From Dimorphilus gyrociliatus (taxonomy: Eukaryota; Animalia; Annelida), in contig CAJFCJ010000011.1 in the NCBI GenBank assembly GCA_904063045.1, positions 620,001 through 684,000 on the forward strand: DNA of 64,000 nt, given 5' to 3'. Positions 5,607 to 32,098 of the stretch are shown piece by piece. A model generated the notes under the pieces. That model saw nothing but the letters and a program-made list of their open reading frames with translations, made no database searches and was not told the DNA's origin. The translations under genes were made by a program, and so were the position numbers. Within the stretch, counting starts at the first letter, position 1. Every line of letters starts with the position of its first letter.

Positions 5607-8600
5607 TTAAATTGCAATATTATAAGAAAAAGCTATTTTATGAGTTATTCGGGAACTTACCTTGTTCATTTTCTCGATATTAGAGCTCTTTTTTTCCGGG
5701 AAACCAAAATTATTTTTGTAGTGAAGAACATCTAGATCATCTTTCGTTCGTTTTTCAGGTAGAGAAAATTCCTTTTTTCTTGGTGTAGAATCTATTGAAT
5801 TCCTTCTACGATTTGTATTAGACTCGATAGAACATGTTGATGAAGTTGATCTTATCCTTGCAGATGAATGAGTTGATTGAGCTTTCCCTTTAAATAAAAA
5901 CCATACAATGAAACATATCATAACTTCGAAAAAATGAAAGTGCCATTGACGATCTATTCTTAGATGAGCTTTTTCGAGAAGCATTGTAGCATTTCTAACA
6001 ACAAATTTCAAAGCAACAATTTCTCGATGCGATCGCTCAATTTGTTCTCTTTGCTTTTGTTCTCTTGCAGTAAATGCCTTGGTCATATTAATTATTTTAG
6101 AATTTAACATTTGGTGAGTCTCTTCCATTTTCTTCCGATATCTTTGGCTAAGCTCCTCCAAATATCTAGAGGTTAAATGGAGATCCAGCTCCAACTCTTT
6201 TATTTTACTCCTAAGACGATTTACCGCGGCAAGCTTCTTGTCATAAGGCAATTTAACTGTTCCTTCCTCGGTCTCAGTTTCATCTACTGTCTTTTCCGGC
6301 TTATCTTTGCTTTCATCTGCATATATATGTTGTTCTGTAGCATTTTTCTCTAATTCCTCAACAGACATCGTAGTGTTCTCTTCTAAAACTACAGAATTTT
6401 CAAGTGTTGATTCTATTGGCTTATCTAACTCGCTACTGGATAATGTACTTGATATGTCGTCGTCAACGCTCTTTTCAATTGGAGGATTTGAAACGACAGA
6501 GGTTGGCCTAATTTGGGCAGTGTCTGGACCGAGGGTAGAAGTGTAGACCTCTTCGTTTGATGAGAAAGTTGATTGAGTGGCTTCAATTTCTAAATTCTCA
6601 GACGATTGTGTCGAAAGCACTTGTTCTTGTTTTGATGAAAACAATTCCTTAGTTTCTGTTGACATATCTACAGATGAAGATTTTTCCTCCTCTAAAGAAG
6701 ATGAAATAGTTGATGACTCTATTTCAGAAGATGTAACAGTTAATTCAAGTGAGCTTGTTGTTTGGCTTAAGGAGGGCTCAACCACTATTGAAGCAGTAGG
6801 TGAATTTTCTATAGCTGATAATGTAGAAGAATCTGTTTTGAGAAGTATTTCTGTGCTAGATAAGTCTGGTACACTGGACACACAGCAAACAGATAGTCCA
6901 ATAAAAATTTCAAAGTATCGGCATAAGAAAACTGAAGGAAAGTATGAACATTGAAAAGATGAGTCAAGATGAACAGGATTTTCACAATTCCAGCATATGT
7001 TTTTTAAATTATCCAGAAAAAAGCCGTGTGTTGCAGATTTGGATATTGCGATAGGAATTTCAGGGCAATTTGTGGTTTTATTTATCACTTTGTTGTCCTC
7101 ATTTGTCCCATTTGAACTAAAACATTTAAAAAATTGTGAATGAGAATGTTTGACATCATATACTTACGTTGCATTAGGGGCACAGGGACCAGAAAAAGTA
7201 CCATTTGAATTTAGGGAAGTGGAATTGTTTTCCATAGTTTCATTACTATTAGCAGAATTTTTTGTATTGAATCCATCTTTGCCTCCTTCCTCTTCTTTCG
7301 AGAGCATTTTATGCATTAGGCCTATTACAGTATCCTTCGCTGTTTTAAAAAGAGTAGGAGATTTCTCATTTGGTGGAACAACATTAGCATTGTCATCTTC
7401 CTGATTGTTTTCTACTTGGTCAGGTTCAATTGTATCAGAATCATCATAATCATCTGTTATACCATAAACTCTCAAAACACTTACAGGACAGTAATGCTCC
7501 TTTCCAAAGTGTTCCATCATGTCAATTCTTATATATTTTGTAAAAGTTTCAATACTACTAGGCGGAAGAACAATGTTGAAAAGTTGTACATCCCTTAACT
7601 CCCTTGCATGAAAAATACCTAAACTTTTCCACTCTTTTGTTGGCCATCTTTCACTAACTTTCACACTGAAAGTCTTTGGCAAGGAACTGAACAATTCATA
7701 ACTTCCTAATTTAATTGCTCTCACAGCAATGCTTTCACAAAGTTCAACAGTAAAGAATTTTTTGGCAGAACAAGGAGAGTTCATGTAGGAGTCCTTATTT
7801 TCAGTTAATATAGCATGAACATTTGATGAATCAGTGTTGGAATTCAAAATTTTTGCTCCACAACGTGAAGATGCATAATTAACACCATTAGTTTTCCTTT
7901 TGCCACTATTTGCACCATTATTGTTTAAAATACCATTTTGGTTATTTGTGTTAGCCACATTTGACTCTGAGGGAGGTAAATTAGTATTACTAGGGGTGCT
8001 ATGTATAATAGGACCTTTATTTTTCTCTGCCTCCAACTCTTTCTGTCGCCACTCTTCAAATGATGGCAATTCTTCTTGAGATGATTTAGCTGTTTCTTCA
8101 GCATTAGCTATTGATATTTCATCAGTCTCCTTATTAGGAGATTTTGAAGTACTTTCTTTATCAATAGAACTCCCAGTTTCTTTGTCTACTGATTTATCTG
8201 TTTGAGAGTCAGTCTCCGGTCCCTTAGCACTTTCTATCTCCTCCTTTCCAGTATCAGTATCTACTGTTACAACTTGTTCAGAGATTATTTCCGTTTGAAT
8301 GTCCTCTGTTAGAATTGCTTGATCTACTGGGGAAGATTGAATATTTGGATTGGGAATCTGTGGATCTGATGGAACTGCATTGATGCTGGTTTGTAAAGTT
8401 TCTTCAATTTCTGTTGAAACACTCTCCTTTTTTTCTATATTCAGCGATGGATCGTCTTCTGGAGAGCAAGGTTCGATAATTCTAAGAAAGAATAAAAAAC
8501 ATAGCAAACAAGATTAGCATGAACTGTTATTTGAACAAATAGTTACTATTGATTTAATTTATCAAAATAGTGACCAATATTCTAAAGTATTTTAGACGAC

Positions 8601-21363: not shown

Positions 21364-24300
21364 CTATCTGGACTCTATGCAGTCAGCAGTTTTTGTAAGC
21401 TTAATTGTATCAATGGCAATATCTCCGGAATAGCCTTTGGCTCTCCATGCTCCAAAGGTAATCTGGGTATAGGAATCAAACTTATACATATTTCTTAAAA
21501 AAATCTATTTCTTACTTTGTCATTGTAATCTAAACTTATAGAAACTGTGGCTTTCCTCCAAATTGTACTTGTTGTTTGTTGTTTACTTAAGGCCCAAACC
21601 TCTTCAAGTTTGTTGGCTGATTCTTTAAAAATTGATAGTTTACCAATATGAAATCCATACATGTTGTACATAAATTCTAGGCAGTGTTGTCCTCCAGAAC
21701 TTAATGCCGGAGTGGAAATTCTAAGAATATTTAGAGTTTAGAGATTATAAAAAGGTTCCATTTCCTATAATAATACTTACAGTGCATAATCACGATTATT
21801 TTTATTGGTGGCTTCAATGTAAAGGTAAAAAGGTAAGGAATCTGCTTCTCTCGGACCTGTTTTAGAAGATTTTGTCTCGCCAGAATGAATTGTCCAATCA
21901 AACTTATCTTCATCAGATTGAATCATATTGCAAAGAGTTTTCTGACCACTCTCCGTTTCGAAACTGCAGGAAAAAACTATTAGGTCACCTTTAGTTGTTT
22001 GCAAAGTTGAAGTTTGAGATTCTGTTGTGCTTTCGAAAAAAACTGAATCGCTTTGTGTTGATAATGACGGAATCGTTGTTATCTGGTAAGTTGTCTGTTT
22101 CGAGGTATTTTCGGTTGTTTCTGATTTTGAATCAAAAGCTGTAGAGATTTTAGAAGTATCAGTTGTAGATGGAGCTAATGTTGATTTTAAGTCTTTGAAA
22201 GTAGAAGGATTACTTTGTGTTTCTTCTACAGACAATTCATTTGTTGTGATGTCATTTTTACCGACTGAGACTGAGAACTTTGTTGAAGATGTTTCGTGTT
22301 GAATTTCTGTTGTTTCTCTATACGTATTTGTTTGAGACGCCGATGACGACGACGATGATGATTCTGTTGACATACTTGGGGTTTCAGTTGAAGGTGAAGA
22401 CATATTAAATAATGATGTGGTCAAAGTAGTTGGGAATTTCGTTGAAATTGTAGTGTCTACTGTTGATTCATCTTTGTAAAGTGAAGTTGTTTGGGAAGAA
22501 TCTGTCTTGGAATGGGAATTTTGCGTAAAATACGTGGTAAAACTTTTTTCTGTTGATTTTTTTGTCGTAATTTTATTTTTTTTATTAGTTGTCGCCAACG
22601 GAAGAAGAGTCCAATATGTAGTGTCAATTCTTTCTGTAACGGCTGCAGGAGTTTTTGAAGTAGTTTCTTTAATTAGTGTGGACAGGTTCATTGTCATTGT
22701 GGATTGTTCTGGATCCTCCTTTGTACTTGTCATCAAAGGAGTAGAAAATTCTGTGACAATATTGCTTGTAACTGAATCTGCCGTAGATTGTTTTAGACTC
22801 GTTTCTCTATTTGTTATTTTAGACGTAAACGATTCGGTTGGAGGGTCTGTCTTAACTGAAGCTGTTGTAGATATCCCTAGCGTTGTTTCTTTAGTTGTTG
22901 AAATTAATACATCAGGATTTCTATGGCATATTTTAGATTGTATCCAACTAATAACAGACTTCTCATTCAGCGTCTTGAAATTTCTTAACCATATAGTATT
23001 ATCGCCATAGGGCTCCGAAATTAATGGTCCTAATTCTTTCCATCTAACATATCGTGATATACTAACTATGACTACTTTAACACCAAGCTCCTTGAGTTTG
23101 TTAGCTTCTAAAATAGTCTGATCATTCTCCACAGATGACGGTCCATCTATAAACATTAAAGCAATTTTATGCCGCAACATTCCTAACTGATTATCTTCGT
23201 ATAATTTTCTTGCTTTCCTGAAGGCGTCAGCAACATTACATCCTAAACTTTTCTTTGGTTTAACTTTAGATTTAATAGCCTTAGCAAAATAAATGTAACT
23301 TGAGTAGTCTCCAAAATCTATATTAGTTGTTGCTTCATCTCCAAACGATATTACACCAAGTCTAATTGCATCTTCCTGCAAATTCAGTGGTCTATTAACA
23401 GTAATTAAGGTCCTTTGTAGCTGTCCAACGTTAGACGATTTTGTAGAATCGAGTAGGTACAATATATCAGCTGCTTGACATTTCTCAAAGTTAATTTCTT
23501 CGATTTCAAGCGGTGGTGGTATAGGTAAATATTCTACTTTCTTTGTAGTCAATGGAACACTAGTTGTTGCTTCGGTAGTTTCGGAAATGGTTGTTGCTGC
23601 AGTTGTAACTGTATAATACAAGTTATATAGTTTTTGATTTAAGATTAGATAGGGTTCTTATTAATATAATAAATTAAAATATCTTTTTCAGAAACTAGTC
23701 TGCTTGGCGTGGTTTTGAATGAAATATTTTAGAATACTTAATTATTCATTGATCAGGCCTATTTTATTTGCAGGAGAACTGTCAGTTACAGTTGAACTCA
23801 AATAAAATTTGTTTGTATAAGTTAAAATATGTGGATCCACTTACAAACATAATCTTTCGGTACAGCCTTTAATACCAGTTTAAATCCTTTATATTTCTGT
23901 GGAAGTTTTACTTTAGAACGAAACGTAACAATTATATCCGTTTTTTTACTTCTTATAACCGATTTTGGTCGATTGAAACCACAAAATCTATAATTCATTA
24001 ACTATATCGAAATAATATTAAGTTTTTGTTACGATATTTACCTTGGTCCCGTCAAGGATTTATCAGGTAAATACTTGATTTCAACCCAATGATAACAAAT
24101 CGTATTTAGATAAATAAATATTTGAAAGTCATTGACAAATTCGGCTACAATATCTGCATTTTTTGGCCCTGATATTCTCCAGTTGCATTCTAAAAAGCTA
24201 CTATACATAGAATCACCATAATTAGGGCTAATCAGCTCTTTTGTTTGCCACATATCTAAGAGAATATCTTCAGAGCAATTACCTAAAGTCGGAACATAAT

Positions 24301-26431: not shown

Positions 26432-29400
26432 TTACTCTGGAAGGCAAAATCTGGCTTCTTTTATCAATACACCAGAACAACAAGCTGGGCATGGCCTATT
26501 GAATAGAAAAACTCAATAGATACAATATAAATAAATATATACTGTAAACATGTAAAGATTTAATATCTATTCCATCATGTATTTTATAATAATTTTTCTT
26601 AGATTATATATTATTTTAATATTTTGACTTACGATCGAATAACTTTTCCAAAAAAGGAGAATTCAATGAAATCAGATTCCGAACAACTATTTAGGCAGCT
26701 GCCTGTCTCGGATAATAGAATCCCAGGAGGTGGATAGGGTAATGAAGAACATCTAGAAAAATTTTCATTAAATATGTAAAATAAAAAGAATATAGATGAG
26801 AATTTTTCTTATCTTCTCATTTAACCTGTCTCTTGTAATTGGATAGAATCTACTCACAATTTTCCATCACAAATACGATAACGTGTTCTGACAGCACACC
26901 CGCCGCAATAACATCCTTTCTTCTTTCCACACTCATTGTCCCATTCTCCCCAAGTTATAAAGAAAGGCGTATAAACTATAACATATAGAAATAATAATGA
27001 ATAATAGAATATTCGTATTCAAATTCAGATCTAACATGGATTATTCAAATGATCCAACGAAGGTCGCTTACTGCTAGTCTCATCTATCTGCGTTGGTTTA
27101 GATGAAATTGAATTTCTACTTGTGCTCACTTGCTTTTTCGTTGAGTTTTCAGGTTCAGCTGTTGACTTATTTTCAACTGTAACCAAAGCTTTTAATGTTG
27201 AAATTTTTGATGAGATTTTCTTTGAAGGGAAAGAACTTGTTAAATAAAGTTGCGAAACGGTTGAAGTTTCTTCCGTACTAGTTGATAAGTCCATTGTTGA
27301 TGGTTTAATTCTCTTCGTAGGAAATGGAATTTTTGAACTGAAAATTGGCCTTACCGAGGAAAAACGAGATGTTGTTAACTCCTCTTTAGTAGTTTTTTCG
27401 GTAGAAGTTGATAAACTTGTTGTAGATTCTCTCCTAACATAAGTCTTTGGTACACTTGAAACTTTCACTCGAAATCCTTTCCAAATCTCGTCAGCCTTTG
27501 GTTGCACAGGATGTTTAGAAGCAAAAGATATTAACATTTTATTTGTCTCGGAGAGCATATGCTCCTTAGGTCTAGTACCACAGCAGAATCTGTAGCCGTT
27601 CAAACGAAAGTCACGTTTATGTTGAACTTCTACCCAGTGATAGCACGTCGGGGATTCGCAATATATGCCAAACTCCCCTTCAAATACAAGTAAAATTTTA
27701 CGATTTTTTGGGGCAGTAATAAGCCAACTACAATCTTCATCTAATGAATAATTTTTTCCAGTTTTGTAATTTGGCGACTGAATTATCCTTTGTCCATAGT
27801 TGGAAAGATGAATAGTTCCTCCACATCTCTCTTTATAGGAATCTCATATCAATAAAATATGGCATAATTAATTTACCATTAAGTTACCTGTTCCTAAACC
27901 CATTGTGCATTCTTTACCAGTTAACCCATGAGGACACTTACATCTATAACAGCTATTAGGATCCTGATAACCTCCATTAGCGCAAACAGGTGAGGGTATG
28001 TTTTGGCAAATATTATTGCAATATGCTTTATTTATTGCCAAAGCATCAAGGAAGGATAAATGAACTCTTTGTCCAATATTTCCTTGATAATTCTTGTCAT
28101 GTGTTTTAATCGTATACTTGTTGTTTATCGAAGACCCCTGAGGAAAGAGTTTTTATTTTATTTATTTACCGGCATTCCAAAAATCTATTTACCCTTGAGC
28201 TATAGTGCATAACACTGTTAAAGTCATATGGGATACCATATGTATTCATATAATTTGGGGATCTTTTTCTAAAGTTGATTAAATTTCCTGGATCTACATG
28301 ATCAGTTTTAATCGTAACATATTTATCTCGATCATAGCGTTGATGTTCATGCCATAGTCCTAGAGCATGTCCTATTTCATGTATCGGCACCCCAAGCTAG
28401 GTATATAAAACAGAGTATTTCTAAGATCTCTTTTTTACAAGTACATGATAAAATCTACGTAGACTTACGAGAGAGAGACATTTATTAGCTATTGGCAAAT
28501 AGATGATATCTGCGTCTTCTCCTCGTCTACCTACACTTGCCCTACACCTAAATATTATAAAAAGGGCCAGGTTTAGTATAAATTTCAATCAGTAATATTG
28601 CATATCAACAAAAAATTAATGTATCAATCAATTTTCTAAACCCAGCCCTCAGTAAGTTTACAAAAAAACTAACCTTACGAAGGCAAACAAAATTCAGTCT
28701 TATAGCTTGGCCGCCATTTGGCCGTGCCTTTCCAACAAACGATTGGCACCTATTATTCGATTAGTAGTGAGTTCAATTAGTGAAGAGAGCGAGAGTTAGA
28801 ATTTATATTAGTCTTAGGTTTATCAAGTAAAACAAGGATAGATTTAACTGCTTAAGATAGACATAGATAATAACTTACCCGAAGCCGAAGTTTGCAAATA
28901 TTAAATGAGGAACTTTTCGGTTGCTGTCTTTCTTCATTTGTTGAAATCGAACGCAAGTTTCGTTTTCCCATTGTTGAATAGCCATTTCAATGACATCCTT
29001 CTCATATGAAACTGAATTTAAAAAATATTATAAAAGACATAAAAAAGAGAATAGAGAAATGTTGACATGATCTTTTCTCTGTTGAACAATAAGAAAAAAC
29101 AGCATAGTTCAATAAATTTGTTTTAATGCGTAACTTACCATATCCTTCATATCTGTACTGAATTGGTAATTTCCATTTTTTATCTGCTGATTTTTCAAAA
29201 TTTTCTACCTTTCTCCTCTTTCTTCTGTTGTCTGAAAGAGGTCTTTCGATTTCATCAATGAACTGCTTAGCTTGCTCATTCGTCAAAAGGATGTCACCAT
29301 ACTCTTCATTATAATCCGTCACCAAATCGTCATGCACGAAAGATTGCGATTTATCTCTTTTCTAAAGAGTATTCAAGTCTTTGTCATAAACCCCGCAAAA

Positions 29401-29645
29401 TAAGTTTATATTACTTACCGTTTTTAAAACCGATTTCAAATTTTTCCATAAATCACAAGATAGTCCATTACACTGCAACTGGTTTTTAATATAATCTTTG
29501 TCCAAATCACTTATAACATCACGACTTGGAAAAGTGCAGATAAGCGGCTGTTTAAGTTATAGAAGAAGAGATCTCTGTGAATCGAATATAGAAATATAAA
29601 GAAAAAATATACCAAGCAAAATAAAAACAGAAGATAAATTGCCAT
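26432..29645 (-). CDS. Astacin (M12A) metalloprotease B: signal - propeptide - astacin - EGF - CUB - Ser/Thr-rich linker - TSP1-like Cys-rich C-terminus
   Basis: HEIGHALGLWH (28349-28381), SVMHY, YGDILL, furin site RRKR, EGF CANGGYQDPNSCYRCKCPHG, CUB, WGEW..CGGCAVRTRYRIC, terminal PCPACCSG..C. Signal peptide MAIYLLFLFCLPLICT. Confidence 0.9.
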
Positions 29646-30154
29646 GAAGAGAGGAAGTTGAACTGAATATTAAAATCCTACGCGATGAGACAGCCCAGTG
29701 ACAGTCGTTTCTACATAATCCTATTTATTTAGGTTAGCAGGCCTAAAACATCCTACAATATAGAAAGTCATACAAATGAAAATTTTAATTGAACGAACTG
29801 AACTTGTGAAGAGTGAGCAACTGAATGTCAAGTAAGAAAATGTTTTATAAATTTTATTTCTAATTGAGGCCTACAAACCAGAAATGCAGGTCACGACGTG
29901 TCTTTGTCCGAATAATGATTACAGGGTTTTGAAAACGGGTGCAACCAAACAAAGAACCTACGTGAAATGATTTGAAAGAATGAAGAATAAAAGTTACAGA
30001 AAATTTCAAAAGTAAAGCTCAAGAGAAATAGGTGAATTTTGATATTCCAAAGGCATTCCTATAAATTTGGTATTCTAATCAGTTCACCAAACTTCCACTT
30101 GAATCAAAATAAATAAAACAATTGACGTCAGATGGCGTAGCAAGATATTTATTG

Positions 30155-31558
30155 TTATAGTTCGTCTTTTCTCGTAATATGTTTTGCTTTAAACGGCCAT
30201 AAAGTATGTTCCTTCTGCTTTGCATCGAAGAAGATTATATCTCCATTTTCCTCCTCTATTACATCGCTTTGCCAACTTGTTGGTTTAAAAAAAGCAAAAA
30301 TCCCTTCGACGTCTTCACTTATAATCATTCTTAATGATTCGTATATAAGTAACGAATTCTTTCCTAATACTAAACTCTCGGTGGAATCAGAACTTCTTAT
30401 TTTAATGATTTTTTCATGGTTCTCTTTATAAAGCAGTGCCGTGAAAACTTTATCTGTTGCTTTAATATTTGTTTCGGTAAATCCAATAAGCTCTACATCA
30501 CATTGACAAAAGCTCATTATAAGAGGTGTTAAAAATTTGTTTATTTCTGTCGAACTATCGTCAGAGTTTAAATTTTCCATCTGAACTAAATCTGTGAGAG
30601 GAGTTGGTGTTTTTGTTTGCACAAAGCCAATCGAATGAAATTCAGTTACTATTTCAGGTAATTTCATTTCAATAATTTTTTGGATAAATATCTTCTTTAA
30701 ATATTCTCGAGAAAAAGCATAATTTTCGTTTAAGGTTTCAAAAAGCGACGATTGATATGAAACACTTCTCCGATGGGTTCTAACAGTATTATTTCCCATG
30801 AAAATTTTCTTATGGTCAGTAATGTATTCACCGGTAATGAAGATATTCTGTTTTCCTCCGATCGCGAAATAAAATACTGATCCAAACTTGCAATTTAATT
30901 TTAGACTCCTTCCGGGATCAACTAAATACAAGTTATTAGTTTTGACGTCAGATTGACCCTCGCTCTTTGGAATTTCGATTTGAGCCATTTCGTCTTTTCC
31001 TTTACCTTTACCTTTACCTTTACCTTTGCCTTTGCCTTTTCCTCTCCTTCCCTTGGATAAAACCAATTGAACTTTCAACTGCTCATTGTAACTGTTAAAT
31101 ATTTCAATCTTGAAGTCCAAGTTGCTCCAGAACCAATCGTAGAAAAATTGCTTATCATCATTTCTCCATCGAGAGGATATCATGCCGGGCATTGAGCCCT
31201 TGGAGAAAAACAGTCCCTCAGTACAGGATTCCACGCGATAAATCGAAAATAAATTTTTTTCTACTGTCCCCCTCTGGATGGAGAAAATTTCTTTATGAAT
31301 CAATATGTGAAGATACGGATCTTCGAGGTAATGCTCTGTAACACTTGCTATTTCTTTCAAGTCATAGTCACACTTTTCTCTAACGAAAATAACAAGTGTA
31401 TGTCTTTCTAGTTCTTGATTTCCATCCCACAAAATTTTTTGCAAATGTTCATTAGAAAAGATGTATCTTGCCACATCACTTAACTTTTCCGGTCGCTTCT
31501 GTCTGTCTTGATCAGATAGTGCTAATAAATATAGCAGAAAAACGGACCGAAAGAGCAT
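30155..31558 (-). CDS. Intronless ER-luminal protein (signal peptide plus C-terminal KDEL); probable thioredoxin-like + beta-sandwich + degenerate 2OG-Fe(II) oxygenase-like domains
   Basis: ATG 31558 starts MLFRSVFLLYLLALS and the ORF ends ...TRKDEL*. The domain assignments come from remembered motif resemblance only (see findings). Confidence 0.75.
   Translation of the reverse strand: MLFRSVFLLYLLALSDQDRQKRPEKLSDVARYIFSNEHLQKILWDGNQELERHTLVIFVREKCDYDLKEIASVTEHYLEDPYLHILIHKEIFSIQRGTVEKNLFSIYRVESCTEGLFFSKGSMPGMISSRWRNDDKQFFYDWFWSNLDFKIEIFNSYNEQLKVQLVLSKGRRGKGKGKGKGKGKGKGKDEMAQIEIPKSEGQSDVKTNNLYLVDPGRSLKLNCKFGSVFYFAIGGKQNIFITGEYITDHKKIFMGNNTVRTHRRSVSYQSSLFETLNENYAFSREYLKKIFIQKIIEMKLPEIVTEFHSIGFVQTKTPTPLTDLVQMENLNSDDSSTEINKFLTPLIMSFCQCDVELIGFTETNIKATDKVFTALLYKENHEKIIKIRSSDSTESLVLGKNSLLIYESLRMIISEDVEGIFAFFKPTSWQSDVIEEENGDIIFFDAKQKEHTLWPFKAKHITRKDEL
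30999..31040 (-). repeat. 6-bp coding repeat encoding (KG)7
   Basis: ccttt(a/g/t) x7, translating GKGKGKGKGKGKGK. Confidence 0.9.
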
Positions 31559-32098
31559 TCCTAATACTTTCCCTATAGTTCTTTTCTCGATCAATAGTAC
31601 AAATCATGTATTTACTATACGAGTTACGGTAACCCGTAGGAAACTAAATAGCTTTTGTGGGCAAGAAAAAGGTTGCACAACAGAAATTCAAGTTTCTTAA
31701 TGAAGAGTTTAATTTCACAGTAATTAATAAGTAAACAAATATCCAAAAATACAATCAAGAAAAATTATGTTCTATATAGTTTGTTCGAATTGCTAAAAAT
31801 GCAAATAATTAAGAAAATCATGATAAAAAATATTCTACATTTATTGCCTAGTCAGCTCATTCAATATAAAAATAGCCAATCCTTTTTTAATTGTCAGTAT
31901 GACATAGTAGGTAAAATGAAAACCATTTCACCAGTTAAAGTTTTATTAACTTGCACTTTTTCGACATTTATAGATAACAGCAGACAAGAAATAGAAAAGA
32001 TATAATACAGTTGCACGCATTTAATTCTACCCACAAGAAAAGCCTTTTCCAATGGCACAATAATTTGATTTGTTAGAGACGGAAATCCATTTTCATTA

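Follow-up and report, generated by a model that had tools for sequence, protein, structure and literature searches.

A transcribed, probably non-catalytic member of an undescribed secretory 2OG-Fe(II) oxygenase family in the annelid Dimorphilus gyrociliatus

The locus and its product

An intronless gene on the minus strand of a 64,000-nucleotide stretch of Dimorphilus gyrociliatus DNA (contig CAJFCJ010000011.1, positions 620,001 to 684,000; the window, in which all positions below are counted) encodes a protein with a signal-peptide-like start and a terminal KDEL. This protein, hereafter the worm protein, belongs to a family of 2-oxoglutarate (2OG)-Fe(II) oxygenases and has lost the family's iron site. 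Its open reading frame (ORF) runs from an ATG at 31558 to a stop at 30155-30157 and specifies 467 amino acids (aa) ending in HITRKDEL. The features of the gene are as follows, with the basis for each in brackets.

30155..31558, minus strand: complete intronless coding sequence, 467 aa plus stop (ORF reading, collinear transcript contig, match to the family hidden Markov model, HMM)
31514..31558, minus strand: signal-peptide-like N-terminus, aa 1-15, MLFRSVFLLYLLALS (hydrophobic segment, Kyte-Doolittle 2.26; similar start in relatives)
31112..31489, minus strand: CxxC-less thioredoxin-fold domain, aa 24-149 (C63, C112, W142)
30773..31111, minus strand: beta domain in the middle of the chain, aa 150-262, a homologue of the VHL-beta-like module of the family (HMM domain 2, 13.7 bits; alignment)
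30995..31042, minus strand: (GK)8 hexanucleotide-repeat insertion in a loop of the beta domain, aa 173-188 (Tandem Repeats Finder, period 6, 8.3 copies; predicted local distance difference test score, pLDDT, <50)
30503..30772, minus strand: long helix and linker, aa 263-352, with the motif LPEIVTEFHSIGFVQTKTP (kept residues; helix 265-303 in the model)
30269..30502, minus strand: eroded double-stranded beta-helix (DSBH) core, aa 353-430 (alignment; Foldseek matches to PHD2 and 6n1f; Atlas clusters of 2OG oxygenases and prolyl 4-hydroxylases, P4H)
30158..30169, minus strand: C-terminal KDEL retrieval signal of the endoplasmic reticulum (ER), aa 464-467 (sequence; fits [KRHQSA]-[DENQ]-E-L)

The absence of introns claimed by an earlier sequence-only reading of this DNA holds for both the uninterrupted 467-codon frame and its transcript. 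Contig 1 assembled from public run X1 (2017) is 2483 nt long, is collinear with 31608..29613 with 0 differences, and has 0 splice joints within the coding sequence. Its other 487 nt resume at 29547, leaving out 29548-29612, a 65-nt GT..AG intron whose length agrees with the species median of 66 bp (PMC7854359). Because the contig omits this intron, run X1 is RNA-derived, and because the RNA-derived contig runs unspliced through the coding sequence, the KDEL gene is both transcribed and intronless. An out-of-frame upstream ATG (31605-31607) at the extreme 5' end of the contig opens a 31-codon upstream ORF overlapping the main start; this ATG may precede the true transcription start. An AATAAA lies 4 nt past the stop.

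Targeting signals are present at both ends of the protein. The N-terminus, MLFRSVFLLYLLALS followed by DQD, carries the basic residue R4 and then an 11-residue hydrophobic segment (aa 5-15, Kyte-Doolittle mean 2.26), and the junction ALS/DQ has small residues at -3 and -1, compatible with the -3/-1 rule. The signal peptide proposed earlier is thus borne out as a segment with a suitable site, at which we infer cleavage. A hydropathy scan of the whole protein found no second transmembrane-like segment, the best other 19-mer scoring 1.36. Nearly all full-length relatives share the hydrophobic N-terminal segment, so that the family's secretory signal is present in the worm protein, as is the KDEL-type end (aa 464-467, also noted earlier), a feature of one family subgroup whose members end in KSEL, KIEL, KDEL, RDEL, HDEL, HEEL, KNEL, SDEL, KDEI or RKEL. 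Together these signals predict residence in the ER.

Membership in an oxygenase family

Compared exhaustively by phmmer with 1.84 billion representatives, the worm protein had a single match, the 498-aa P0001 (E 9.9e-4; matching region aa 33-159). Searches from P0001 gave 16 and then 21 clusters, none with a Pfam domain, and one record, P0030, carries the JGI label 'prolyl 4-hydroxylase'. Two conserved peptides, used to scan JGI metagenomes, yielded 346 related loci, most of which match the catalytic part only (P0001 aa 269-445) at ~40% identity. The family set used below comprises P0001-P0031 and metagenomic ORFs in L008-L058. Its sources are a TARA scaffold, long-read metagenome contigs, which also bear MADF and Harbinger genes and tandem family copies, a foraminifer transcriptome (P0011, Ammonia transcript MMETSP1384) and many marine contigs. 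The metagenome scan shows the family to be large, with a shorter form in prokaryote-like contigs. All ORFs of the relatives are uninterrupted, and intronlessness is therefore a habit of the family and no peculiarity of the worm gene.

The worm protein is a member of this family. An HMM built without it scores it at 61.4 bits (E 3.8e-21), against 8.9 bits for the best of 2000 shuffles. The score falls along the chain, from 43.1 bits at aa 32-167 to 13.7 bits at aa 198-325 and 1.7 bits at aa 396-461, and the three pieces are all collinear with the family model. The KDEL ORF is the only ORF of the window to match this HMM (E 2.8e-18; next best 1.2), and the HMM found no further family members in the 64 kb. 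Family motifs occur in the worm protein in the correct order and spacing: LPEIVTEFHSIGFVQTKTP corresponds to the family's QPxxxPxFTxxGFKKxxIP, PLIMSFCQC to PLxEEWSG (the CxC recurs in P0005, P0027 and P0028), LLIYES to EMLxYES and FFKPTSW to HYRPxxW. These motifs, the HMM score and the fold matches to PHD2 and 6n1f uphold the earlier assignment to a 2OG-Fe(II) oxygenase-like family.

Sequence searches with the worm protein outside this family were otherwise uninformative. Pfam, searched with the whole protein and with pieces at E up to 10, gave nothing except a low-complexity EBNA2 match, and PDB sequences gave only GK-repeat matches (DNMT1, uS5); all three matches are spurious, caused by the low-complexity (GK)8 run. 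A word-index search returned 0 matches, probably swamped by GK words, and ESM Atlas feature searches scored 0.76-0.81, which is noise level.

Domain architecture

The N-terminal domain has the thioredoxin-superfamily fold and lacks a CxxC motif, as the sequence-only reading had supposed. In the family profile one invariant cysteine aligns with the first cysteine of WCGPC and the second adjoins the cis-proline. In the worm protein C63 holds the first of these positions, C112 stands directly before the cis-Pro position and W142, the tryptophan of WxW, is conserved. The residue following the second cysteine is Thr113 in the worm protein and proline in the family. C63 lies in the context CDYD, with no Cys or Ser at +3, so that both CxxC and CxxS are absent. 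Because the first-Cys and pre-cis-Pro sites touch in thioredoxins, a C63-C112 disulfide is likely.

The middle domain is all-beta and aligns with the family's beta module (13.7 bits), consistent with the small beta domain of prolyl-hydroxylase-like proteins suggested earlier. The worm protein keeps N155 and a DPG...FG.xFxF pattern, and the W and GH positions of a subgroup of relatives typified by L012 are L/Q and GS. The (GK)8 insertion is unique to the worm copy, being a gap in all relatives, and the underlying microsatellite is likely to differ in length between individuals. In the linker that follows, P301, G311, P318, E328 and P345 are kept.

For the C-terminal third, AlphaFold2 with a 24-sequence family alignment gave a model (whole chain: pLDDT 73.5, predicted template modelling score 0.70) that reaches pLDDT 80-94 over aa 340-430. 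Foldseek matched this region to PHD2 (5la9, 6yw1) and to Burkholderia 6n1f with probability 0.99-1.0 over ~200 columns at TMt ~0.4; Atlas 2OG/P4H clusters also match, with TM 0.50-0.55. The DSBH fold expected by the sequence-only reading is thus found, in a model that leans on the family alignment.

Several observations weigh against an oxygenase origin of this region. The model is driven by the family alignment and hence is not independent evidence; single-sequence AlphaFold2 was uninformative (pLDDT 33.7); and the C-terminal homology, taken alone, is marginal, with the 1.7 bits given above and a catalytic-only HMM (27 metagenomic sequences) ranking the worm protein first against 3000 shuffles only narrowly, 10.4 versus 9.2 bits for the best shuffle. 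Language-model features of aa 295-467 list QSOX, PDIA6-C and Thioredoxin_6 clusters, that is, thioredoxin-like b domains and not 2OG oxygenases. The C-terminal third could accordingly have another fold, such as a PDI-like b-type thioredoxin domain, and the protein would then resemble the PDI family of the ER and have only its first two thirds in common with the oxygenase family. Against this, the feature score of 0.81 is at noise level, within the range reached by shuffled proteins; the motifs LPEIV..GF..K.P, PLIMSFCQC, LLIYES and FFKPTSW are ordered and correctly spaced; and hhalign aligns the C-terminal part alone over 120 collinear columns (E 8.6e-4). We consider such a replacement of the fold very unlikely.

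Loss of the iron site

Each of the three ligands, the two of HxD and the distal histidine, is conserved in 20-21 of the 21 relatives. In the worm protein a 9-column gap covers the family's H and D columns, the distal His is I413, the family's TH is DK and its GRP is SED; the sole histidine of the core, H381, sits in a variable loop. The alignment thereby confirms the earlier remark that no HxD...H iron triad is evident. The catalytic motif YGIREY..HVDR..TH..S.IL...YESAKLIHGRP...HYRP is broken, with G359, E362, Y406-E-S408, F421 and P426 surviving, and the core spans 78 residues against 101-104 in relatives (25 shorter). Given the deletion of HxD, the Ile in place of the distal His and a core shortened by 25 residues, the worm protein cannot hydroxylate.

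One way around this conclusion would be catalysis at a non-canonical site for a metal or cofactor, formed for instance by the C351-x-C353-D354 cluster or by further acidic residues. The CxC stands just ahead of the core and is common to some relatives, and K425 occupies the R/K position of the family's HY[RK]P (FFKP in the worm protein), which, like the Arg of GRP, is a candidate for the basic residue that binds the 2OG C5 carboxylate. However, all three canonical ligands are gone along with the HxD strand, and the relatives that bear CxC retain a full HxD...H, so that CxC is no substitute site. Retained catalysis is extremely improbable.

The erosion is uneven. Of 49 family-invariant positions the worm protein keeps 18 overall, and 8 of 33 in the core. 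Within the family the DSBH core is the better conserved part, at a mean pairwise identity of 54% (minimum 37%) against 26% for the thioredoxin domain, and the worm protein is 20% identical to the family in both; its thioredoxin module thus departs from the family about as little as those of the relatives do from one another. The terminal branch of the worm protein, at 4.21 substitutions per site, is 8x the median of 0.5. Since the targeting signals, the thioredoxin-domain cysteine pair, W142 and the linker prolines are kept and the catalytic core is not, erosion has been selective rather than uniform. With the other members the worm protein shares the collinear architecture, signal peptide, cysteine pair and tryptophan, linker motif, KDEL-type end and uninterrupted ORF, and it differs from them in the missing HxD and distal His, the shorter core, the (GK)8 insert and the long branch.

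The same data could be read as those of an expressed relic without function, an oxygenase duplicate that lost its activity and has been decaying since, its frame still open by chance. The extreme branch (4.21 versus 0.5), three deletions in the core with an in-frame microsatellite expansion, and the small share of invariant positions retained (18/49) would all fit such decay. A frame of 467 codons is unexpected by chance at such divergence in a genome of 34% GC (4.5e-16 at the base composition of the window), the gene is transcribed, and the signal peptide, an exact KDEL, both thioredoxin-domain cysteines, W142 and the linker prolines have been kept, unlike the catalytic core. On balance a relic appears improbable.

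A probable binding function

The ORF, its transcription, its family membership, the thioredoxin fold and the loss of the metal ligands are established here. We regard it as quite likely that the worm protein is a soluble pseudoenzyme of the ER lumen, a very fast-evolving member of the secretory 2OG-Fe(II) oxygenase family that works by binding. A function, most likely binding, is taken to survive because the targeting signals, thioredoxin module and linker are selectively kept and because the frame is open despite extreme divergence. The non-catalytic ER chaperone or partner subunit put forward by the sequence-only reading accordingly stands as the most likely reading.

The mechanism that we propose starts from the build of the family, in which a thioredoxin-fold domain without redox activity is followed by a VHL-beta-like domain, then a helical linker and finally a P4H/PHD-like DSBH. 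The worm copy has lost the iron site and kept the signal peptide, KDEL, thioredoxin signature residues and linker motif. It may now bind to an active paralogue, serving this enzyme as a non-catalytic partner or as a regulator; alternatively, it may be a chaperone-like binder of that paralogue's secretory substrates. The analogy would be with CRTAP and P3H4 serving P3H1, or with PDI serving collagen P4H.

CRTAP and P3H4/SC65 are non-catalytic partners of P3H1, and PDI is the beta subunit of P4H. As predicted for the worm protein, they are ER-lumenal, carry or need KDEL-type retention, do not themselves hydroxylate and are related or bound to a 2OG oxygenase, with a thioredoxin-fold module associated with a P4H-like module. 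CRTAP and P3H4 wholly lack the oxygenase domain, whereas the worm protein keeps a dead one, and PDI forms a chain of its own, in which the CxxC sites are active. The searches run found no homology of the worm protein to CRTAP, P3H4 or PDI. With P4H/PHD-type prolyl hydroxylases (2OG-FeII_Oxy_3; 5la9, 6yw1, 6n1f) the modelled C-terminal domain shares a predicted DSBH fold without the iron ligands, and the P4Ha_N/peptide-substrate-binding and PF13640 domains of the collagen P4H alpha subunit are absent by Pfam at E up to 10. ERp44, ERp29, ERp27 and further ER proteins with a redox-inactive or single-Cys thioredoxin fold resemble the worm protein, itself predicted to be retained in the ER, in lacking CxxC, and ERp44 structures (5hqp, 5xwm, 5gu6) are among the Foldseek matches. 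Only the generic fold is common, however: C63 is probably paired with C112 and not free, and the other domains differ.

To our knowledge, few pseudoenzymes derived from 2OG oxygenases have been described. The domain-by-domain pattern of erosion in the worm protein, with the catalytic core gutted and the thioredoxin domain and linker kept, points to a binding function that has outlived catalysis.

The parent family

Relatives match PF13640 weakly (E 0.0011-0.0043), and none reaches a Pfam cut-off. Family profiles found no PDB sequence relatives for the oxygenase part, and literature searches on thioredoxin-P4H fusions, on 2OG pseudoenzymes of the ER and on VHL-beta/P4H architectures turned up no relevant paper. 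With no Pfam model, PDB sequence relative or paper found, these proteins appear, from their sequences, to be an undescribed eukaryotic family of 2OG-Fe(II) oxygenases of the secretory pathway. Its members are common in marine metagenomes and unite, after a signal peptide, a thioredoxin fold, a beta domain that is possibly VHL-like, and a P4H-like core; the substrates of the active members and the ligand of the dead copy could lead to a new modification in the secretory pathway of protists and small invertebrates.

In pVHL the VHL beta domain (PF01847) is the module that reads hydroxyproline. It is matched below threshold by the middle domain of 4 of 13 family members (best E 2.6e-4; 19.8 bits, cut-off 21), and the worm protein itself gives no match. 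Full-length members with a VHL-like middle domain (L012:2680-4077, L013, L023 and L050) show the pattern W...PGE...LGHxF and PF01847 E-values of 2.6e-4 to 8e-4; L012-type members may fuse a hydroxyproline reader to a P4H-like enzyme. The L012 middle domain had no phmmer match in the PDB. A speculative extension, which we think unlikely, is that the family constitutes a self-contained ER hydroxylation system, with thioredoxin module, VHL-beta-like product reader and P4H-like oxygenase in one chain, and that the dead worm copy is a dedicated 'reader' or regulatory subunit. One chain would then suffice for a task that collagen P4H divides among separate subunits, and the astacin zymogens encoded immediately downstream, the first exon of which lies on the same assembled contig, might be among the clients of the worm copy.

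Two metagenomic loci are of separate interest. On a prokaryote-like marine contig, one ORF (L045:2074-3537) encodes a canonical P4H domain (PF13640, E 3e-18) followed by the family domain, and thus pairs two different 2OG oxygenase modules within a single chain. A eukaryotic metagenome contig (L003:3797-13742) carries three tandem intronless family copies, the third of which (P0003) departs after YESAK, lacks the distal His and is possibly frameshifted or dead.

Neighboring genes

Downstream of the KDEL gene lies an astacin gene with its ATG at 29644, a protein start of MAIYLLFLFCL/PLICTF and an astacin domain at 28166-28390 (PF01400, E 1.3e-25); the intron 29548-29612 belongs to this gene. 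VWA and MAM domains occur at 21780-23621. Of the neighbors described earlier as intron-rich, the astacin gene does have introns, as its 65-nt GT..AG intron shows. The putative CMTR1 neighbor has a sub-threshold WW match as its sole Pfam match.

A single assembled contig of X1 joins the 3' flank of the KDEL gene to exons 1 and 2 of the astacin gene, which could reflect read-through, overlapping untranslated regions or assembly merging. An operon was rejected as the default explanation, as the D. gyrociliatus genome paper reports no operons or trans-splicing (PMC7854359) and contigs cannot prove a single transcript. Two more long single-exon ORFs lie on the minus strand at 7164-8507 and 5607-7088; one, of 493 aa, is without a Pfam match, and the other has a Sad1/UNC (SUN) domain (E 1.2e-27).
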